This document shows positions 3,001 to 58,304 of a stretch of 64,000 bases of DNA, in pieces. This stretch comes from Oikopleura dioica (Eukaryota > Animalia > Chordata), in the NCBI GenBank assembly GCA_907165135.1, contig OU015570.1, positions 372,001 to 436,000 of the forward strand. Reading direction: 5' to 3'. The notes under the pieces are model-generated. The model saw only the letters and a list, made by a program, of their open reading frames with translations. It made no database searches and was not told the DNA's origin. The translations under genes were made by a program, and so were the position numbers. Each line of letters starts with the position of its first letter. The stretch's first letter is position 1.

Positions 3001-3710
3001 AATCGTTTCGTAGCACGTCGCAAGCCCAACTGTGTTGCGATTTTTCAGGCAGTTAGCGCTCAATACGTTTCATCCTGGATCAATGTCGAATCCTTTCTGC
3101 TTGTTTTTTCCTTTTTCTTCTGCCATTGAAGTAACTTCGAGCTTTTTATGTGGAAAATCCCGTCTCCAAGCTGAAGTAAAGGAATCGTTTTGGACACCAT
3201 AACCTTTTTCTGTCGATTTACCTAGCTAATTCTGTCGTGTTTTCGTCAGTTGATCAGGGTTATAGTTTCCTCGGCTCCACATCGAGATCGACATTGCTTT
3301 TCGCCCGCACCAAAGGTTGTCGATTCCGAACATCCCGTGTTTCAGTGTCCACCGCTTTTCGAATCAAAGTGTTATTGTCATCACTCAGAATTAGCAATTA
3401 CCTGCGCAGGTTTTTGCCCTTGCGATTTCCGGGATTCTGTGGATCAAACGTGTACGTTGTTGATGGACTGAAAATCGCCCTCGAAAAGCCCAAGCAGAGT
3501 TCATGTTGATGATTCCAGTCGGCTGTATCGTTTCGACTATTTCCATTATGTCTAAAAGTTCCATTCGTTAACTCTTCCGTGTAATTTGGTAAAATTTAAG
3601 TGTAAACGGATACGGATCTAAAGTTTCAGTACAATGAAGATGGTTTCATCGCGCCAGGATCGGGCGGCTTCTTCTTTCCTAAAGCAGGCAGGCGGGATTC
3701 GAGACCCTTA

Positions 3711-4041: not shown

Positions 4042-4785
4042 CTATTTAGTCCATGTGAAGGTTTTTCGAACTGCAGTTTTTAATTGACTGAAAGTGATGT
4101 CATCATCGTCAATTCCAAGTAGGCGTGTCATCTCAGCGTATTTATGTTGATTGCAGTTCTTCATTGTCATAACCTGAAGAATGCAAACCGCATCGGTGGC
4201 CCTTGGGTCCTTTCCTGTTGTTGTTTTGTATTTCGAGCAGAGACGCAAGAAGAACCGCATAAGCGTTTCATTTTGGCCGCGAGTCATCCTCAGCACATCT
4301 GTTGCCGTCGCTGATCTGGAGGGATACAGGTAGGCTCCAACGGAATCCACAAATAATTCGAAGTCTTTGCGTTCGCTATCTTCTATGATTTCGTCGACGT
4401 AACGATCTCGAGGTCGAAGCGTCATAATGAGCAAGTTCATCATCTGTTTGTCAGACAGCCCAGACTCGCGAGCGTATTTGAAAGCACTCTTGTTTCGGTT
4501 GAAATGTTCCCAGAACGTCAGGTTCGGCTCAGTCCAGTTCCGAAGTCCATATTTTTCCGGGCTTGATATGATGACTTTGTCGGGATCCCGCTTCGGCAAT
4601 TCTGTTCCTTTGTGTCCTTGCTCACCGTCTGAGAGAAAGGTGTTCGTCTGAGTCCCTCTTGTGTTTGTTCCGCCGGTTTCAGGCTCAGGATCAGTGAGCG
4701 GGACATCGAGGTTAGTCTTGGTGTATTTGAATTCGTTGTTTCGAGAAGACATTTTTGGGTTTCGCAGTCTAAATAAGGTATCCAT
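4042..4785 (-). CDS. Gag-like capsid protein of an LTR retrotransposon (remnant; downstream frame degenerate to ~2.95 kb)
   Basis: 247-aa ORF. MTRGQNETLMRFFLRL resembles the Ty3/gypsy Gag major-homology region (QxxxESxxxFxxRL). A degenerate downstream frame contains FDIDPG*NVLS (~3.05-3.1 kb), a possible decayed aspartic-protease motif. Confidence 0.65.
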   Translation of the reverse strand: MDTLFRLRNPKMSSRNNEFKYTKTNLDVPLTDPEPETGGTNTRGTQTNTFLSDGEQGHKGTELPKRDPDKVIISSPEKYGLRNWTEPNLTFWEHFNRNKSAFKYARESGLSDKQMMNLLIMTLRPRDRYVDEIIEDSERKDFELFVDSVGAYLYPSRSATATDVLRMTRGQNETLMRFFLRLCSKYKTTTGKDPRATDAVCILQVMTMKNCNQHKYAEMTRLLGIDDDDITFSQLKTAVRKTFTWTK

Positions 4786-4978
4786 AGTTAATATGTCTTT
4801 TCTTCCTTTTTGTTAATCTTTGCAAGCCTTAAATTTTGTGAAAGCAGTGACGTTTAACGGTTGCAAATTGTGGAAGACGAAATTCTTTGTTGATAAGCTC
4901 GGTGCTTCTGAAGCCTTTTTAGCTTAATGAGGTAGTTAGGCTTAATAATTAATGTTAAGTTTGTAACACTTACTCATG

Positions 4979-5750
4979 CTATCCCCGGCGTCGGCTCAGC
5001 CTTTCAGGAAGCTTTCCCGAGAGAGGGATTTTACGCGTATTTTCGCTTGTCGGGAAAGGGAGGTTTCTTTGTGGCTGGCCATTGATTGCGAACGCTCGTT
5101 GTACCCGCCGTTGTTCTCGCTGCGCTTCGTATTCAGATGCGAATTGGCGGATTCGATGGTCAGTTGTACGGCAACGCTCACAGTTATCCAGGTTTGAATT
5201 GAGCAGTAGAGACAAGGTCCGTTCATTGTTGATTTTTCTAAAGAAAAACCTTGCCGTTTGCTTTTGGGCCGCGTAAAGAGAAATGTAGTTCGTCCGGATG
5301 CGACGAAATTCAATTGTGATTTTGAAATGCCATTCTAGCAGCTCATCAAGCGTAGTTGGCGCAGGGCTGGTTTCGAGGATTCTTTCAAGATTCCTTAGAT
5401 TTTATTTATAATTATATTATTTATAAGATTTCTTGGTGAATAATTTGGCAGGGCTGAAGAGTTAGCCGTTCTTTGAATCATCACTACGATTGAGCCGATA
5501 ATTCCGTGACTTTCCGATTGATGGCCAATCGGGTATCGTTTGCCGGCGAGTGCGTCGGGAATCAATTTGAGATACATTTGTTTAATTCTATTCGTGACGT
5601 TGCTGCGTTGTTCCACACTCATTATTTCTTTTCTTAATTGTGTTGCAATCGTATCTAAATATGATCAATTGTCGAGATTTTTCGAGAGCTCCGCTGACTC
5701 TTTAATCATCGAGCTCCGCCGAGGTTTTCACAGAGGAGGTGGACTTATGG
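4979..5750 (-). pseudogene. Unknown ORF immediately upstream of gag (same strand), interrupted
   Basis: ORF pieces 5395-5622 and 4979-5395 join in frame (..PNYSPRNLERILETSPAPTTLDELLEW..) once a short AT-rich insertion at ~5395-5430 flanked by duplicated aag(a/g)aatctt is removed. One stop near 5670. Contains CERCRTTDHRIRQF (CX2CX4H, knuckle-like). Confidence 0.4.
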
Positions 5751-54280: not shown

Positions 54281-55589
54281 TATGTCTTTATCAACAATTT
54301 TGAGCCGGTGAGAAAGTTATTGATCGGGTGACCAATTAGTGTGCTGTAGTAGGGATTAAGAGAGATAAGTATAGTTTGGGGGTGTTTTGACTTCGAAACA
54401 TTCGGTTAAAAAGTAAGATGTTGTTCACTTCTGTGAAGTTTCTCTCCAGTTCGGATTGTTTCTTTAGTTTGGAGAAGTGGTCGATTAAAGGTAAACGAGA
54501 GAAGGGATTGAACAGGAGTTACGAACTGAACTGGCAAAAATGCGAGTGAGCCGGTGTGTGAGAAAGAGAGTAAGGTGCGAGTAAAACTAGAAAGAAATAA
54601 TCACGTTTCTGGAGCCTATAGATAGGGTCCACGCTCAAAAATTAGGTACCCCAAATAATGGTCCAATGATTTTCGAAATTATATATGTGATAGAGATGTA
54701 TCGTTGAGGTTTTATATCTCTTTATCCGAGAAAAACATAAAAGGGTTGAGAAATAACAAGGCCCTTAAATTGGCAAAAATCCGAAAATGGTCAAGATGGA
54801 CAATTTTTTTAAATTTAAAAAAAGAAATGTATGTTAATTTAATTGCGTATTTCAAATTTAAAAACTATTTTTTGGAGGATGGCCTAATTAAACAGAAATG
54901 TAAGCGATTTTTTGTCGATTTCGCCCCTTTTCAAAGCAGCGCGGCGCCGATTGCCTCGGGCGCTCCTAGGGTGTCCAAGACAATTTTTAATAATTTTATC
55001 CGCTTTTAAACTGAATTTAATAAAGAACATTTTATTCTCGTTTATATTTTAAAAAGAAAAAAATTTGAAAGTATTACTGAAAATGACATAATAATTTTCA
55101 TTACCTTGGGCTTAATTTGAATTTCTAGTCTTTTTCTCTCGATTTTTTTTTCAAAATTTTCTTTTTTTATAACAAAATCGAGAAAAATAGGATGAGTTTT
55201 GACGATAATATTAAAAAAGAAAAAGAAAAATTAAATTTTTGGCCATTGAAAAACTCAAAAGAAGATGGAAGGTTCATCAAATTCACTGCATTCTTCCGCG
55301 ATTGAGCCAAGCAACAATGGTTGGATCAGTGTTTGAAAAAATGGTCTAAACTAAGATAAGCGAGTGAGCTTGTTGTGGGGAGTATCAGTGATCATAGTTG
55401 GAAAAAACACCAAAAAACCGCGTGCGCGTGCGCGATTTTTCCAAAATCCCAGTGCGCGTGCGTGCGCGTGCGCAATGATTTTCAGAACCTGCGTGCGGGT
55501 GCGTGCGCGCACGTGCGCATTATTTATCGAAGATAACATATTTTTATCAAATCTATATGAGTTAAGAAAAAACAATAATGGAAATTTTA

Positions 55590-58050
55590 TCAGTCTTCCA
55601 GCTCATCCAAAAATTCAAGGACATCATCGTGCTGGGTGAATTGTGTGAGCTCAAGTATTGTTTCGGCCAATATTCTTTTCTTTTTGCCGCTTCGAACATA
55701 GTCTGATGTTTGATTGAAGGTTCTCTCAATATCTGAAGTTCCACAGGGCGCGGCAAGGAGCTTAAGAAAATTGAGCTAAATATAAAGAATATACAGTTGG
55801 TTTCCTTTTTTCCGGACAAATTTTGTCCCCTGGTCTTCGAAAAAATGTCCGGAAAAATGGGTCACCGGATAAAAATGCATGTCCCACCAAGTATACATAA
55901 ATTTTTTCGAGAAACAGACATTTTTCAGTCTAAAAGTCGATTTACCACGGAGTTAAGTGAAAGCTTCTGAGAATTGATTGAAATCTCGCCAACAAGGTCC
56001 ACTTGCGCCCGAAAAGAATTTAATTCAGCCGTCGATTGCCTCTTTTTTCCCAAAAAAAATTATATCATGTCAATAAAATTTGAAAAAAGTCCGGAAAATT
56101 GGACCATGGTCGATTTTGCAGTGTCTCACTCAAAGGCCTTCAAATCTGAAAATTGTCCGGAAAAGTGGACTCCGGAAAATAGGAAACAAACTGTATGCAC
56201 CTTTTTGCCACAAAAGCAAATTGTGGAAATTTTGTTGATATTAATTGATCAGACCAAAAGAGACATTAAATATGATGTGTAGAGAACATGATCTTTTCCA
56301 TAGGCTGCGCCCTTCTGTGTTGTCTGCCATTCTTCATCTGGAAGACTCTCGTAACTGAATATGCGATTTTTTTTTCATCAGTAAAATTTGGAACCCCAAA
56401 AATTGGGACCCCCAAAATTGGGAATCCCAAAATTTGGAACTCTAAAATTGGGAACCAAAAAATATAGAACCCCAAATTTTTTTTGTGGGTTATTCTTGGG
56501 CCCCCCAAATTATAATCGGTTATATTGGGACCCTTAAAAATCATTCTCCAATGTATAACCTTTGCATTTCCCGTTCAATATCGGATAGTGAAGGACTATC
56601 CGTAGTGGAAGTAGTCGACTGAGAAGATTGGCTTGACTTTCTCTGTAAATCATTATCAATCAGTTTTGTGGACCGGAACTGGAATTTTAATTTGTGGTTC
56701 TCCCCGATTCAAGTCGATTCTCATAATAAACGCTTTCGGTCGCTCACGATACGTATTCTCACGGCATTTATTCTGAATCATCGTGACTTGTTCGTTGAAG
56801 AACGGGTCCTTCGATTTTTCTAAATGTTTCCAAAAGAAACTCAGCGAAACCGACTGCCTTATCGGGTGAAGGTACACAGCTGCCAAATTAACATCTAGAA
56901 GTCGCGTAGGGTCAGTTTTCGTAACAATCGAACCATCGAGCATAAACGCGCCAAACAAAATAGCTGATAGTTTGCTGTATGCAGCGTGAGATAGTTTTTT
57001 TAGGATAAACTGAAATTAAGTGTTCAATTTTTTTGGGATTCCCAAGAATTACCTTTTAATCAATCTCCTTGCTGTCAATTTTTTCCGTCACTTGAGTCAA
57101 AAATTTCGTTGTCAGACTAAAAGCATGAATCTGGTCGACAACTGATGCATCCGATTTTTGAAGGGCTTTGTTTTTGACCATGATCTCCCGACTGATGAGA
57201 TATTTTGATTCCAAGTAGTTCCAACTGGGCATCGATTTGGGAATCAGATATTTTCTTGGGTTTCCCACACTTGATATTCTGTTGAGAGTATTTTTCCATA
57301 CTAGTGCAGTGACGATGTTGTTCCATGTTTCAATGCTGCGTCCCTTGTCATCGGTTTAACGGCGACTTTTTGAAACTCGACAAATGAATCTTCGTAAGAC
57401 TTATCGAGGTTGAAATGCAGATTCGCATACTCTATGAAACAATCTGCTATTCGGTTGTAACTGAAAAAAATATTTTTTTGGGAGTCCCAAAAATACTGAT
57501 CAAAAAAAAATATTCATTTGGGGGCCCCAATTATATCATTCAATATAATATTTTTGGGGTCCCCAAATATATTAATCAATTAATAAATGATTACCTGTGA
57601 ATACCACACAAAATGACGATATCAGAAAGCAAATTTGCGACTCGTTTCTCGCTAGCATCGACTGAGCAGGCGATTGAGAAGATCTTATTATAGGGAACAC
57701 CAAAATGCTCAAGCCGATTTCGAGCATTGTCTGCAACTTGTTCGCTATAATCATCTCCTGGTTTGAGATCGAAGCAATCCAATCCTCCAAGGAAATTGAC
57801 TTTTGTTCCATTTCTTCTTATGACGTTAAGTTATAATCCGTGCGCACTTGAGGAATAATTTGACACAGTGTCGAATACTGCTTTACTGTCAATTTGTACT
57901 GTCAGCAAGTTTCGATCAAGAATCATGTTCATATTCGATCGAATTCGTTCAATTGTTTTAATTGATGCATCTTCAATTTCCTTTCGTACGTAGTATTTGC
58001 TCGGTATAAGACCGGACAGACACGGATAAAATCCGTACACGGACATGTCC
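55590..58050 (-). pseudogene. hAT-family transposase pseudogene with three GT-AG introns
   Basis: LIPSKYYVRKEI..LTVQIDSK (D1); EHFGVPYNKIFSIACSVDAS (D2); LCGIH|SYNRI (CxxH); AAVYLHP; EREMQ|SYESLP; FWSD..FPQFAFVA; LKLLAAPCGTSDIERTFN (dimerisation domain with catalytic E). Introns at 57461-57594, 57010-57052 and 56355-56559. Confidence 0.85.
55794..56193. mobile_element. Tc1/mariner-type MITE (TA TSD); longer inverted relative at 58972-59557
   Basis: TA|CAGTTGGTTTCC..GGAAACAAACTG|TA with TTTCCGGA repeats. Confidence 0.85.
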
Positions 58051-58304
58051 GTTTAGAACCCTGTGCATTACCGATTGGTGATAAAGACGAGCGTTTCCCC
58101 AATTTGAAATTTCTATGATCATATGATATGATAAGGGACTATCACGGGAGCGCGAGGGCCCAATTTTTGCTTTCCCAACTACCCGAAATTGCCATCCATT
58201 TTTCTTGATTTTTCAGACAATTTATGTCTTACCTGCTGATTCCAAATTTGATCGAAAAATTGAAAAAGAAAATATTGAATATTATGAAAAACCCTTCTCC
58301 TTAA

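Follow-up and report, generated by a model that had tools for sequence, protein, structure and literature searches.

Among animals, Oikopleura is the classic example of massive turnover of introns, and the origin of its new introns is debated. The stretch of Oikopleura dioica DNA analysed here (64,000 nt, C3:372001-436000 of the assembly, hereafter the window) raises this question at a single locus: a decayed and 5'-truncated hAT transposon copy on the minus strand (55397..58063, the 3' end being approximate) has a transposase gene in which three GT-AG intervals all contain the same short palindrome. Did an element carrying the palindrome create these introns, or did the palindrome enter introns that were already present? 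Comparison with related elements in one assembly (64,281,565 bases in 19 contigs, the largest 17.09 Mb and another 16.16 Mb; C3 itself is 2.9 Mb and very repeat-rich) points to the latter. The three intervals are, to judge from where their counterparts lie in relatives, inherited ordinary spliceosomal introns of the hAT transposase gene and older than the palindromes. We regard it as moderately probable, overall, that such inherited introns were colonised by a hairpin-forming mini-repeat, TTGGG-N3-CCCAA, which is confined to introns and spreads from intron to intron. The median intron in the O. dioica assembly OKI2018_I69 is 49 nt (PMC8008620); for such a genome the window introns would be long because this 13-nt palindromic unit colonised them.

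All three introns are on the minus strand. Intron I_a (57461..57594, 134 nt, phase 2; CACAG|GTAATC...TTTCAG|TTAC) holds three exact palindromes, at 57554, 57518 and 57478. Intron I_b (57010..57052, 43 nt, phase 0; AAAAG|GTAATT...TTTCAG|TTTA) holds one, at 57033, and intron I_c (56355..56559, 205 nt, phase 2; CAAAG|GTTATA...TTCAG|TTAC) holds three exact and three degenerate ones, with a 15/30-nt tandem array of about six copies. A preliminary description of the locus had given the same three minus-strand GT-AG intervals and flanks, with which the sequence agrees exactly, and the phase-2 junctions of the two long introns (CGIH-S-YN and EMQ-S-YESLP) were confirmed. It had also noted decay near the 43-nt intron, which is present as an in-frame TAA at 57058-57056, two codons 5' of the I_b donor; the phase that it left uncertain is 0, with an intron of the related element L010 at the same codon boundary. 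Its palindrome counts of about 3, 1 and 7 become 3, 1 and 3 when only exact units are counted, about seven being fair for I_c if the degenerate units and the array are included. The palindrome is real, but its earlier spelling with a 2-nt centre gives only mismatched matches and is better replaced by the 13-mer TTGGG-N3-CCCAA.

As had been noted, the exons lack the palindrome, all seven exact window copies being inside the three introns and none elsewhere, and it is commoner than chance: with up to one mismatch, 11 matches were found in the window against 2.1 expected, a number reached in none of 100 shuffles. The only exonic near-match (57256-57268, one mismatch) codes for VGNPR and looks like chance. 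A fourth palindromic intron at about 57225-57298 was rejected; the interval aligns as coding sequence to L010, and its frame change comes from an internal deletion.

The age of the introns was assessed from relatives with and without palindromes. L010 (C1:12121206-12124875) is a complete 3.67-kb element with CAGAGTTCCAAAA ends, the 8-bp target duplication CCTCAGGC on both sides and (GCGCACGC)n subterminal repeats; together with the window copy and L014 it makes up F1, a low-copy hAT family. Seven of its eight introns contain palindromes. When introns 1-4 are removed at GT-AG, one open frame runs from the ATG through exon 5, and removal of introns 5-8 likewise joins open segments. Two further loci carry zero palindromes: L011, a related hAT that is intact, encodes the protein P0001 exactly via nine micro-introns of 37-45 nt, and L012 encodes P0002 via five of 32-42 nt. 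The exons of the window copy are ~45% identical to L010 and 27-38% identical to P0001 and P0002.

I_a lies at the same codon and in the same phase as the palindrome-free 45-nt intron that follows P0001 residue 311 in L011 (C-x-x-H plus one split codon); L010 and L014 have no equivalent, and their coding sequence is uninterrupted there. I_b occupies the position of L011's palindrome-free 41-nt intron (499/500) and of L010 intron 6. I_c matches L010 intron 7 in position and phase, the nearest L011 intron being 7 codons off. The presence/absence differences among relatives envisaged in the preliminary description are thus seen in part: I_b and I_c are common to L010, and I_a is common to L011 and missing from L010 and L014. 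Since I_a and I_b stand at palindrome-free L011 intron sites and I_c is common to L010, the palindrome entered older introns and did not create them. In a second hAT family, F2, introns c, d and e also have palindrome-free introns at matching positions in the relatives L049 and L050.

The borders throughout are GT-AG or GC-AG, the phases keep long open frames over four consecutive introns in L010 and three in the F2 element L016, and copies without a given intron have seamless coding sequence at its exact borders. A reading of the intervals as chance GT...AG stretches, or as junk inserted into a pseudogene, could appeal to the state of the window copy, which is dead with at least six lesions, but has almost no probability: the borders coincide to the base with introns of L010 and L011/P0001, and frames are restored in several copies. 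The claim that the intervals are introns of a hAT transposase gene is upheld by these same matching positions.

The preliminary description had further suggested that one intron-generating mini-element hit the gene three times. Such an introner-like origin, in which a mobile element with its own splice sites was inserted three times and created three introns, would account for the motif and the AG|GT...CAG|TT context common to all three. It could also draw on L010, where one palindromic intron has been copied to a new site and where intron 3, specific to L010 and L014, starts like I_b (GTAATTC, then the same unit). It is nevertheless very unlikely. Two of the positions are held by palindrome-free micro-introns in L011 and the third by an intron in L010, neither flanking nor target-site duplications were seen at the three window introns, and the supposed hallmark context is not kept at the homologous L010 introns (CAG|GT...AAG|CT and CAG|GT...CAG|AT). 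Because I_a found no other match genome-wide and L010 intron DNA matched only the F1 hAT family, there is no dispersed introner family; rather than many near-identical copies forming introns in unrelated genes, clusters were found only in eight loci of three hAT lineages. For the three window introns the introner idea therefore fails, and only a weaker form of it survives, in L010.

There, intron 4 (146 nt) matches intron 6 (115 nt) almost perfectly over its whole length, bar one extra 30-nt unit, and the match continues past the borders, for 1 nt on the upstream exon side and for 5 nt on the downstream one. Intron 4 is not present in L014 (~80% identical), in the window copy or in L011, where the coding sequence is seamless, and the L011 intron nearest to its site is 3-4 codons off and in another phase. 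On this comparison intron 4 is a recent intron gain, copied from the existing intron 6 to a new site; the few exon bases that came with it hint weakly at copying at the DNA level, with microhomology, over clean reverse splicing. Intron 3, confined to L010 and L014, was probably also created at a position that formerly lacked an intron.

Genome-wide, 162 exact TTGGG-N3-CCCAA units were counted against 31 for a reversed-pattern control, and 90 of the 162 fall in eight loci of three lineages: F1 (window 7, L010 26, L014 4), F2 (L016 17, L017 20, L019 8) and F3 (L018 6, L020 2). The F2 copies L016 (C1:5362991-5366612) and L017 (C5:~1326000-1330000) are 3.6-kb hAT elements, 98-99% identical, with ends TAGGGATTCTATCGG, the Ac-like TAGGGATTC, and 8-bp target duplications (GCCATATT in L016, GTTATAAG in L017); given this identity and the different duplications, the element transposed recently. 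L017 has an extra insertion of ~430 nt near its 5' end. Exon 4 of F2 is 28% identical to a hAT at L015, and no protein similarity between F2 and F1 was detectable. F3, which is probably a hAT as well, is transposon-like and truncated, its gene having a Cys/His N-terminus and its ends being of the CAGAG type.

Introns account for 86 of the 90 clustered units; the other four are in non-coding DNA of truncated F3 copies, either upstream of the gene or at unassignable positions. In L010 (26/26), L016 (17/17) and the window (7/7) the confinement is complete, with none in exons, untranslated parts or element ends; by hand arithmetic, the 15 intron clusters would fall this way at random with a probability of about 1e-10. 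For a 27-nt double unit (two units at 14-nt spacing, up to one mismatch), 20 sites were counted, each in an F1 or F2 intron, and the control gave 0. The hAT loci L011, L012, L013 and L015 contain no palindrome, and lineages found with PF05699, the hAT dimerisation domain, did not coincide with palindrome sites among the matches listed. The palindrome is thus concentrated in introns of a few hAT lineages and nearly absent elsewhere in the 64-Mb genome.

About 70 exact units are isolated, outside the F1, F2 and F3 loci. Isolated 1.5-unit copies, TTGGGAxTCCCAAnTTGGGAx', were observed at ~10 unrelated places, including L022, L023, L035, L037, L038 and L039 (1.2-kb loci, each with the copy at its centre); the final base is always the complement of x, and with 18 fixed bases the chance expectation is ~0.002. 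One unit (601-613 of L025, C4:2886071-2887283) lies within an intron of a trypsin-like host gene whose downstream exon matches Pfam Trypsin at 3.8e-31. At L032 (C1:14622408-14623620) and L040 (C1:3376676-3377888) single palindromes adjoin interstitial telomere-like TTAGGG/CCCTAA repeats. Saturation with TGCGCA was not seen in the palindrome-bearing hAT elements, and metagenome scans with a protein profile and with the double-unit pattern found no Oikopleura-like DNA.

Within introns, the arrays grow via tandem amplification. Their periods are 14-15, 30 and 50 nt in tandem, and the near-identical F2 copies L016 and L017 differ in having 3 and 5 double units. The dead copies (window and L014) have decayed units; in the complete L010 and in the F2 copies, which moved recently, the units are sharp. 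The pattern is compatible with maintenance or ongoing amplification. Neither terminal inverted repeats with a target-site duplication, as in a miniature inverted-repeat transposable element (MITE), nor other flanking direct repeats were found around each unit. Units abut with a start-to-start distance of 14 nt and 1 nt between them. The idea that they are footprints of hAT excision was dropped, as identical units recur in tandem at that spacing.

In the mechanism we propose, the unit would enter existing micro-introns of hAT transposase genes and multiply there through tandem slippage or unequal exchange, and it would also be copied between introns; occasionally a whole palindromic intron would be copied into coding sequence and become a new intron, as happened with L010 intron 4. 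Copying would take place at the DNA level, probably by template switching during the repair of transposon-excision gaps. In RNA, the arrays may fold onto themselves and thereby loop out the added length; the intron would then still resemble a micro-intron of ~45 nt and be tolerated. By hand count, the intron remainder outside the arrays (5' and 3' segments together) is ~25-80 nt, about the normal micro-intron size. Our best guess is accordingly modest in scope: a repeat that is tolerated, hairpin-forming and confined to introns. A bolder version would make the 27-nt double hairpin a minimal mobile intron module, moving horizontally between introns of hAT families that have no detectable protein similarity, rarely into host introns, and able to seed new introns. 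This we consider doubtful; if true, it would amount to a transposon-borne intron nursery in the animal whose introns turn over faster than in any other known.

Predicted RNA folds bear out the earlier suggestion of a hairpin motif for the two long window introns, at z scores of about -3 to -4: I_a folds at -39.1 kcal/mol (z -4.0) and I_c at z -2.9. Measured against shuffles, the predicted z is ~-3 to -6 in the longer F1 introns and ~-2 to -3 in three other introns, and is not significant for the 43-nt I_b; L010 intron 4 reaches -61.7 kcal/mol (z -6.2). Adjacent units pair into longer stems in these predictions. The arms of the unit never vary or covary, its spacer is always 3 nt, its centre is free (21 types), and 43% of units have extended complementarity. 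A hairpin with a triloop would have this form, and so would the site of a dimeric protein.

The palindromes could accordingly be sites for a dimeric DNA-binding protein, either a host factor serving as an intronic enhancer or a transposase-related regulator, with introns kept as their location because no other free space moves along with the element. Invariant arms, the fixed 3-bp spacer and the 21 types of centre would suit such a site, as would its recurrence in hAT lineages without detectable protein similarity and the isolated 1.5-unit copies at ~10 unrelated loci, far above chance. We still find this reading unlikely. The candidate protein is only putative, the 14-bp spacing is not helical-phase, and in F2 relatives the corresponding introns contain a different hairpin repeat, which speaks for structure or repeat dynamics and not for one specific site. 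The preliminary description had also raised the possibility that the palindrome occurs within the subterminal repeats of the element; on inspection, those of the window copy and L010 consist of (GCGCACGC)n. The terminal and subterminal repeats of each lineage differ from the palindrome, which itself stays the same, and binding by the element's own transposase is therefore disfavoured. A related idea, that the palindrome mimics the tip of each lineage's terminal repeats, was dropped because the unit variants do not track the F1, F2 and F3 ends.

The different repeat was observed in L049 (C3:2243000-2250000, reverse-complement positions 4277-4470) and L050 (C3:789500-796500, reverse-complement positions 3371-3440 and 4325-4468), whose hairpin-repeat introns keep the F2 exon borders. 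It is a hairpin-type tandem, GGCTGTTCT-NAG-AACAGCC, in units of ~31 nt, and its presence in relatives of F2 suggests that these transposons may generally have introns inflated by hairpin repeats peculiar to their lineage.

Germline-restricted splicing limits transposase in other transposons. By analogy, the arrays might be RNA-level regulators, their hairpins slowing or gating splicing and so limiting transposase, or feeding the production of small RNAs against the element. The strongly stabilised predicted folds, above all that of L010 intron 4, would agree with this, and so would the polarity of the double-unit junction, for which the sense strand gives CCCAAATTGGG at 18 of 20 sites (one base differs in the two L019 copies). 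We judge it quite improbable, as the folding argument is purely predictive, palindromes fold by construction, and the polarity is common to only about three independent lineages.

Several points weigh against colonisation by a tolerated intronic repeat. Splicing of the intervals is something that we infer from sequence, and the reading frame is broken twice in L010 and once in the F2 gene (where an unrecognised micro-intron is the alternative), so that none of the carriers is proven functional. The route of DNA-level copying rests on only 1 + 5 flanking bases. Invariant arms and a fixed 3-nt spacer fit a sequence-specific protein reader at least as well as a hairpin. If the repeat were a mere neutral passenger, it would be odd that its arms and the 27-nt double unit recur in hAT lineages without detectable protein similarity while other hAT lineages and nearly all host introns are free of it.

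The two L010 breaks are at A-runs (~4920-4936 and ~5405) and are apparently single-base, and L014 seems to carry the first; they could be homopolymer errors of the Nanopore assembly instead of true lesions.

A Pfam search with single exons (window copy, L010 and F2) gave no significant match, and hAT identity is for this reason argued via full-length relatives, terminal repeats and target duplications. Exons were searched and aligned one by one, not as a joined spliced protein. A profile (A1) seeded with the best window exon matched only 15 proteins among 1.84 billion representatives, the full-length ones being P0001 and P0002; P0003 is a single-exon relative on a 974-nt JGI metagenome contig. 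P0001 and P0002 score 34 and 32 bits against PF05699 (cut-off 21.4), and the membership of the window copy in this family is transitive, through these two proteins. The hAT hallmarks of an 8-bp duplication and short terminal inverted repeats starting YARNG are present in L010 and F2.

Comparable systems are known. Near-identical or transposed introns have been attributed to O. dioica by Denoeud et al. 2010, as related in two reviews (PMC4122922, PMC3443670). In both cases, as far as those accounts go, an intron has been duplicated within one gene, at a new place and with seamless borders (L010 introns 4 and 6); the differences are that the carriers here are transposases, that the common part is a 13/27-nt palindromic unit in three hAT lineages, and that most carriers are old invaded introns and not new ones. 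Fungal introner-like elements exceed regular introns in length, are predicted to form stable secondary structures and decay into ordinary introns (PMC3609843, PMC4457414). The present introns are alike in length, predicted structure and degeneration, but the fungal elements number in the hundreds, lie in unrelated host genes and give rise to the introns themselves, whereas here eight loci and mostly pre-existing introns are involved. The (stw)introns of Hypoxylaceae are highly symmetrical and integrate seamlessly without flanking duplications, and their symmetry is suspected to act in proliferation (PMC8469720). Symmetrical intron sequence and seamless integration at new positions are common to both cases; the fungal introns have terminal inverted repeats of 45-55 nt and spread through host genes, in contrast to the short tandem palindromes in the intron interior here. 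Introners derived from DNA transposons (Huff, Zilberman and Roy 2016, cited in PMC13326754) are a further parallel, and larvacean genomes are said to carry introner transposons. Repeated intron-associated DNA in a marine eukaryote is the point of likeness. The difference is that here neither terminal inverted repeats nor target-site duplications were seen, nor any co-opted splice sites; units abutting at 14-nt spacing leave no room for target duplications.

The case illustrates well, at a local scale, how repeats spread between introns, and is not a new kind of system. What it adds is that the window introns are invaded ancestral introns, and that the unit is common to three hAT lineages and nearly absent elsewhere. 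Its value lies in the family-wide pattern, the window copy being only a fossil, and in the stages that stand side by side: palindrome-free micro-introns (L011, L012), inflated positions (window, L010) and a copy at a new site (L010 intron 4). It raises the question of whether the unit is a selfish repeat tolerated in introns alone, a place where a protein docks, or an aid to splicing whose structure would let a spliceosome tuned to 49-nt introns handle introns of 100-280 nt.

The rest of the window copy, all on the minus strand, agrees with its description as a dead element. The 5' terminal inverted repeat CAGGGTTCTAAAC at 58063 is the only end kept, the 3' end near 55397 is degenerate, and no recognisable target-site duplication surrounds the copy. 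The N-terminal exons are missing, and the lesions, at least six, include two in-frame stops, at least two frameshifts, an internal deletion (~60 codons and one intron gone) and a MITE insertion. The exon ending in CGIH, the hAT C-x-x-H block (57595..57830), has an open frame and aligns to P0001 residues 261-310. The exon between I_b and I_c (56560..57009), from which profile A1 was seeded, is the best conserved (46% identity to L010, E 2.5e-27) and has a frameshift near 56660-56700. The last exon with its stop codon (55590..55760) contains the hAT C-terminal motif LLAAPCGTSDIERTF and aligns to P0001 695-736, within the PF05699 match of that protein; the subterminal (GCGCACGC)n repeats follow at 55420..55545, L010 having the same repeats at both ends. 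A fourth intron position (55761..56202) is equivalent to L010 intron 8 and to L011 695/696. It holds a palindrome-free micro-intron of ~38 nt, with a 2-nt frame discrepancy at its donor, split by the TA-flanked MITE of ~400 nt (~55793-56194; ends CAGTTTGTTTCC...GGAAACCAACTG, internal TCCGGAAAA motifs). A MITE of the same family interrupts L014 at a different site (~4960-5350).

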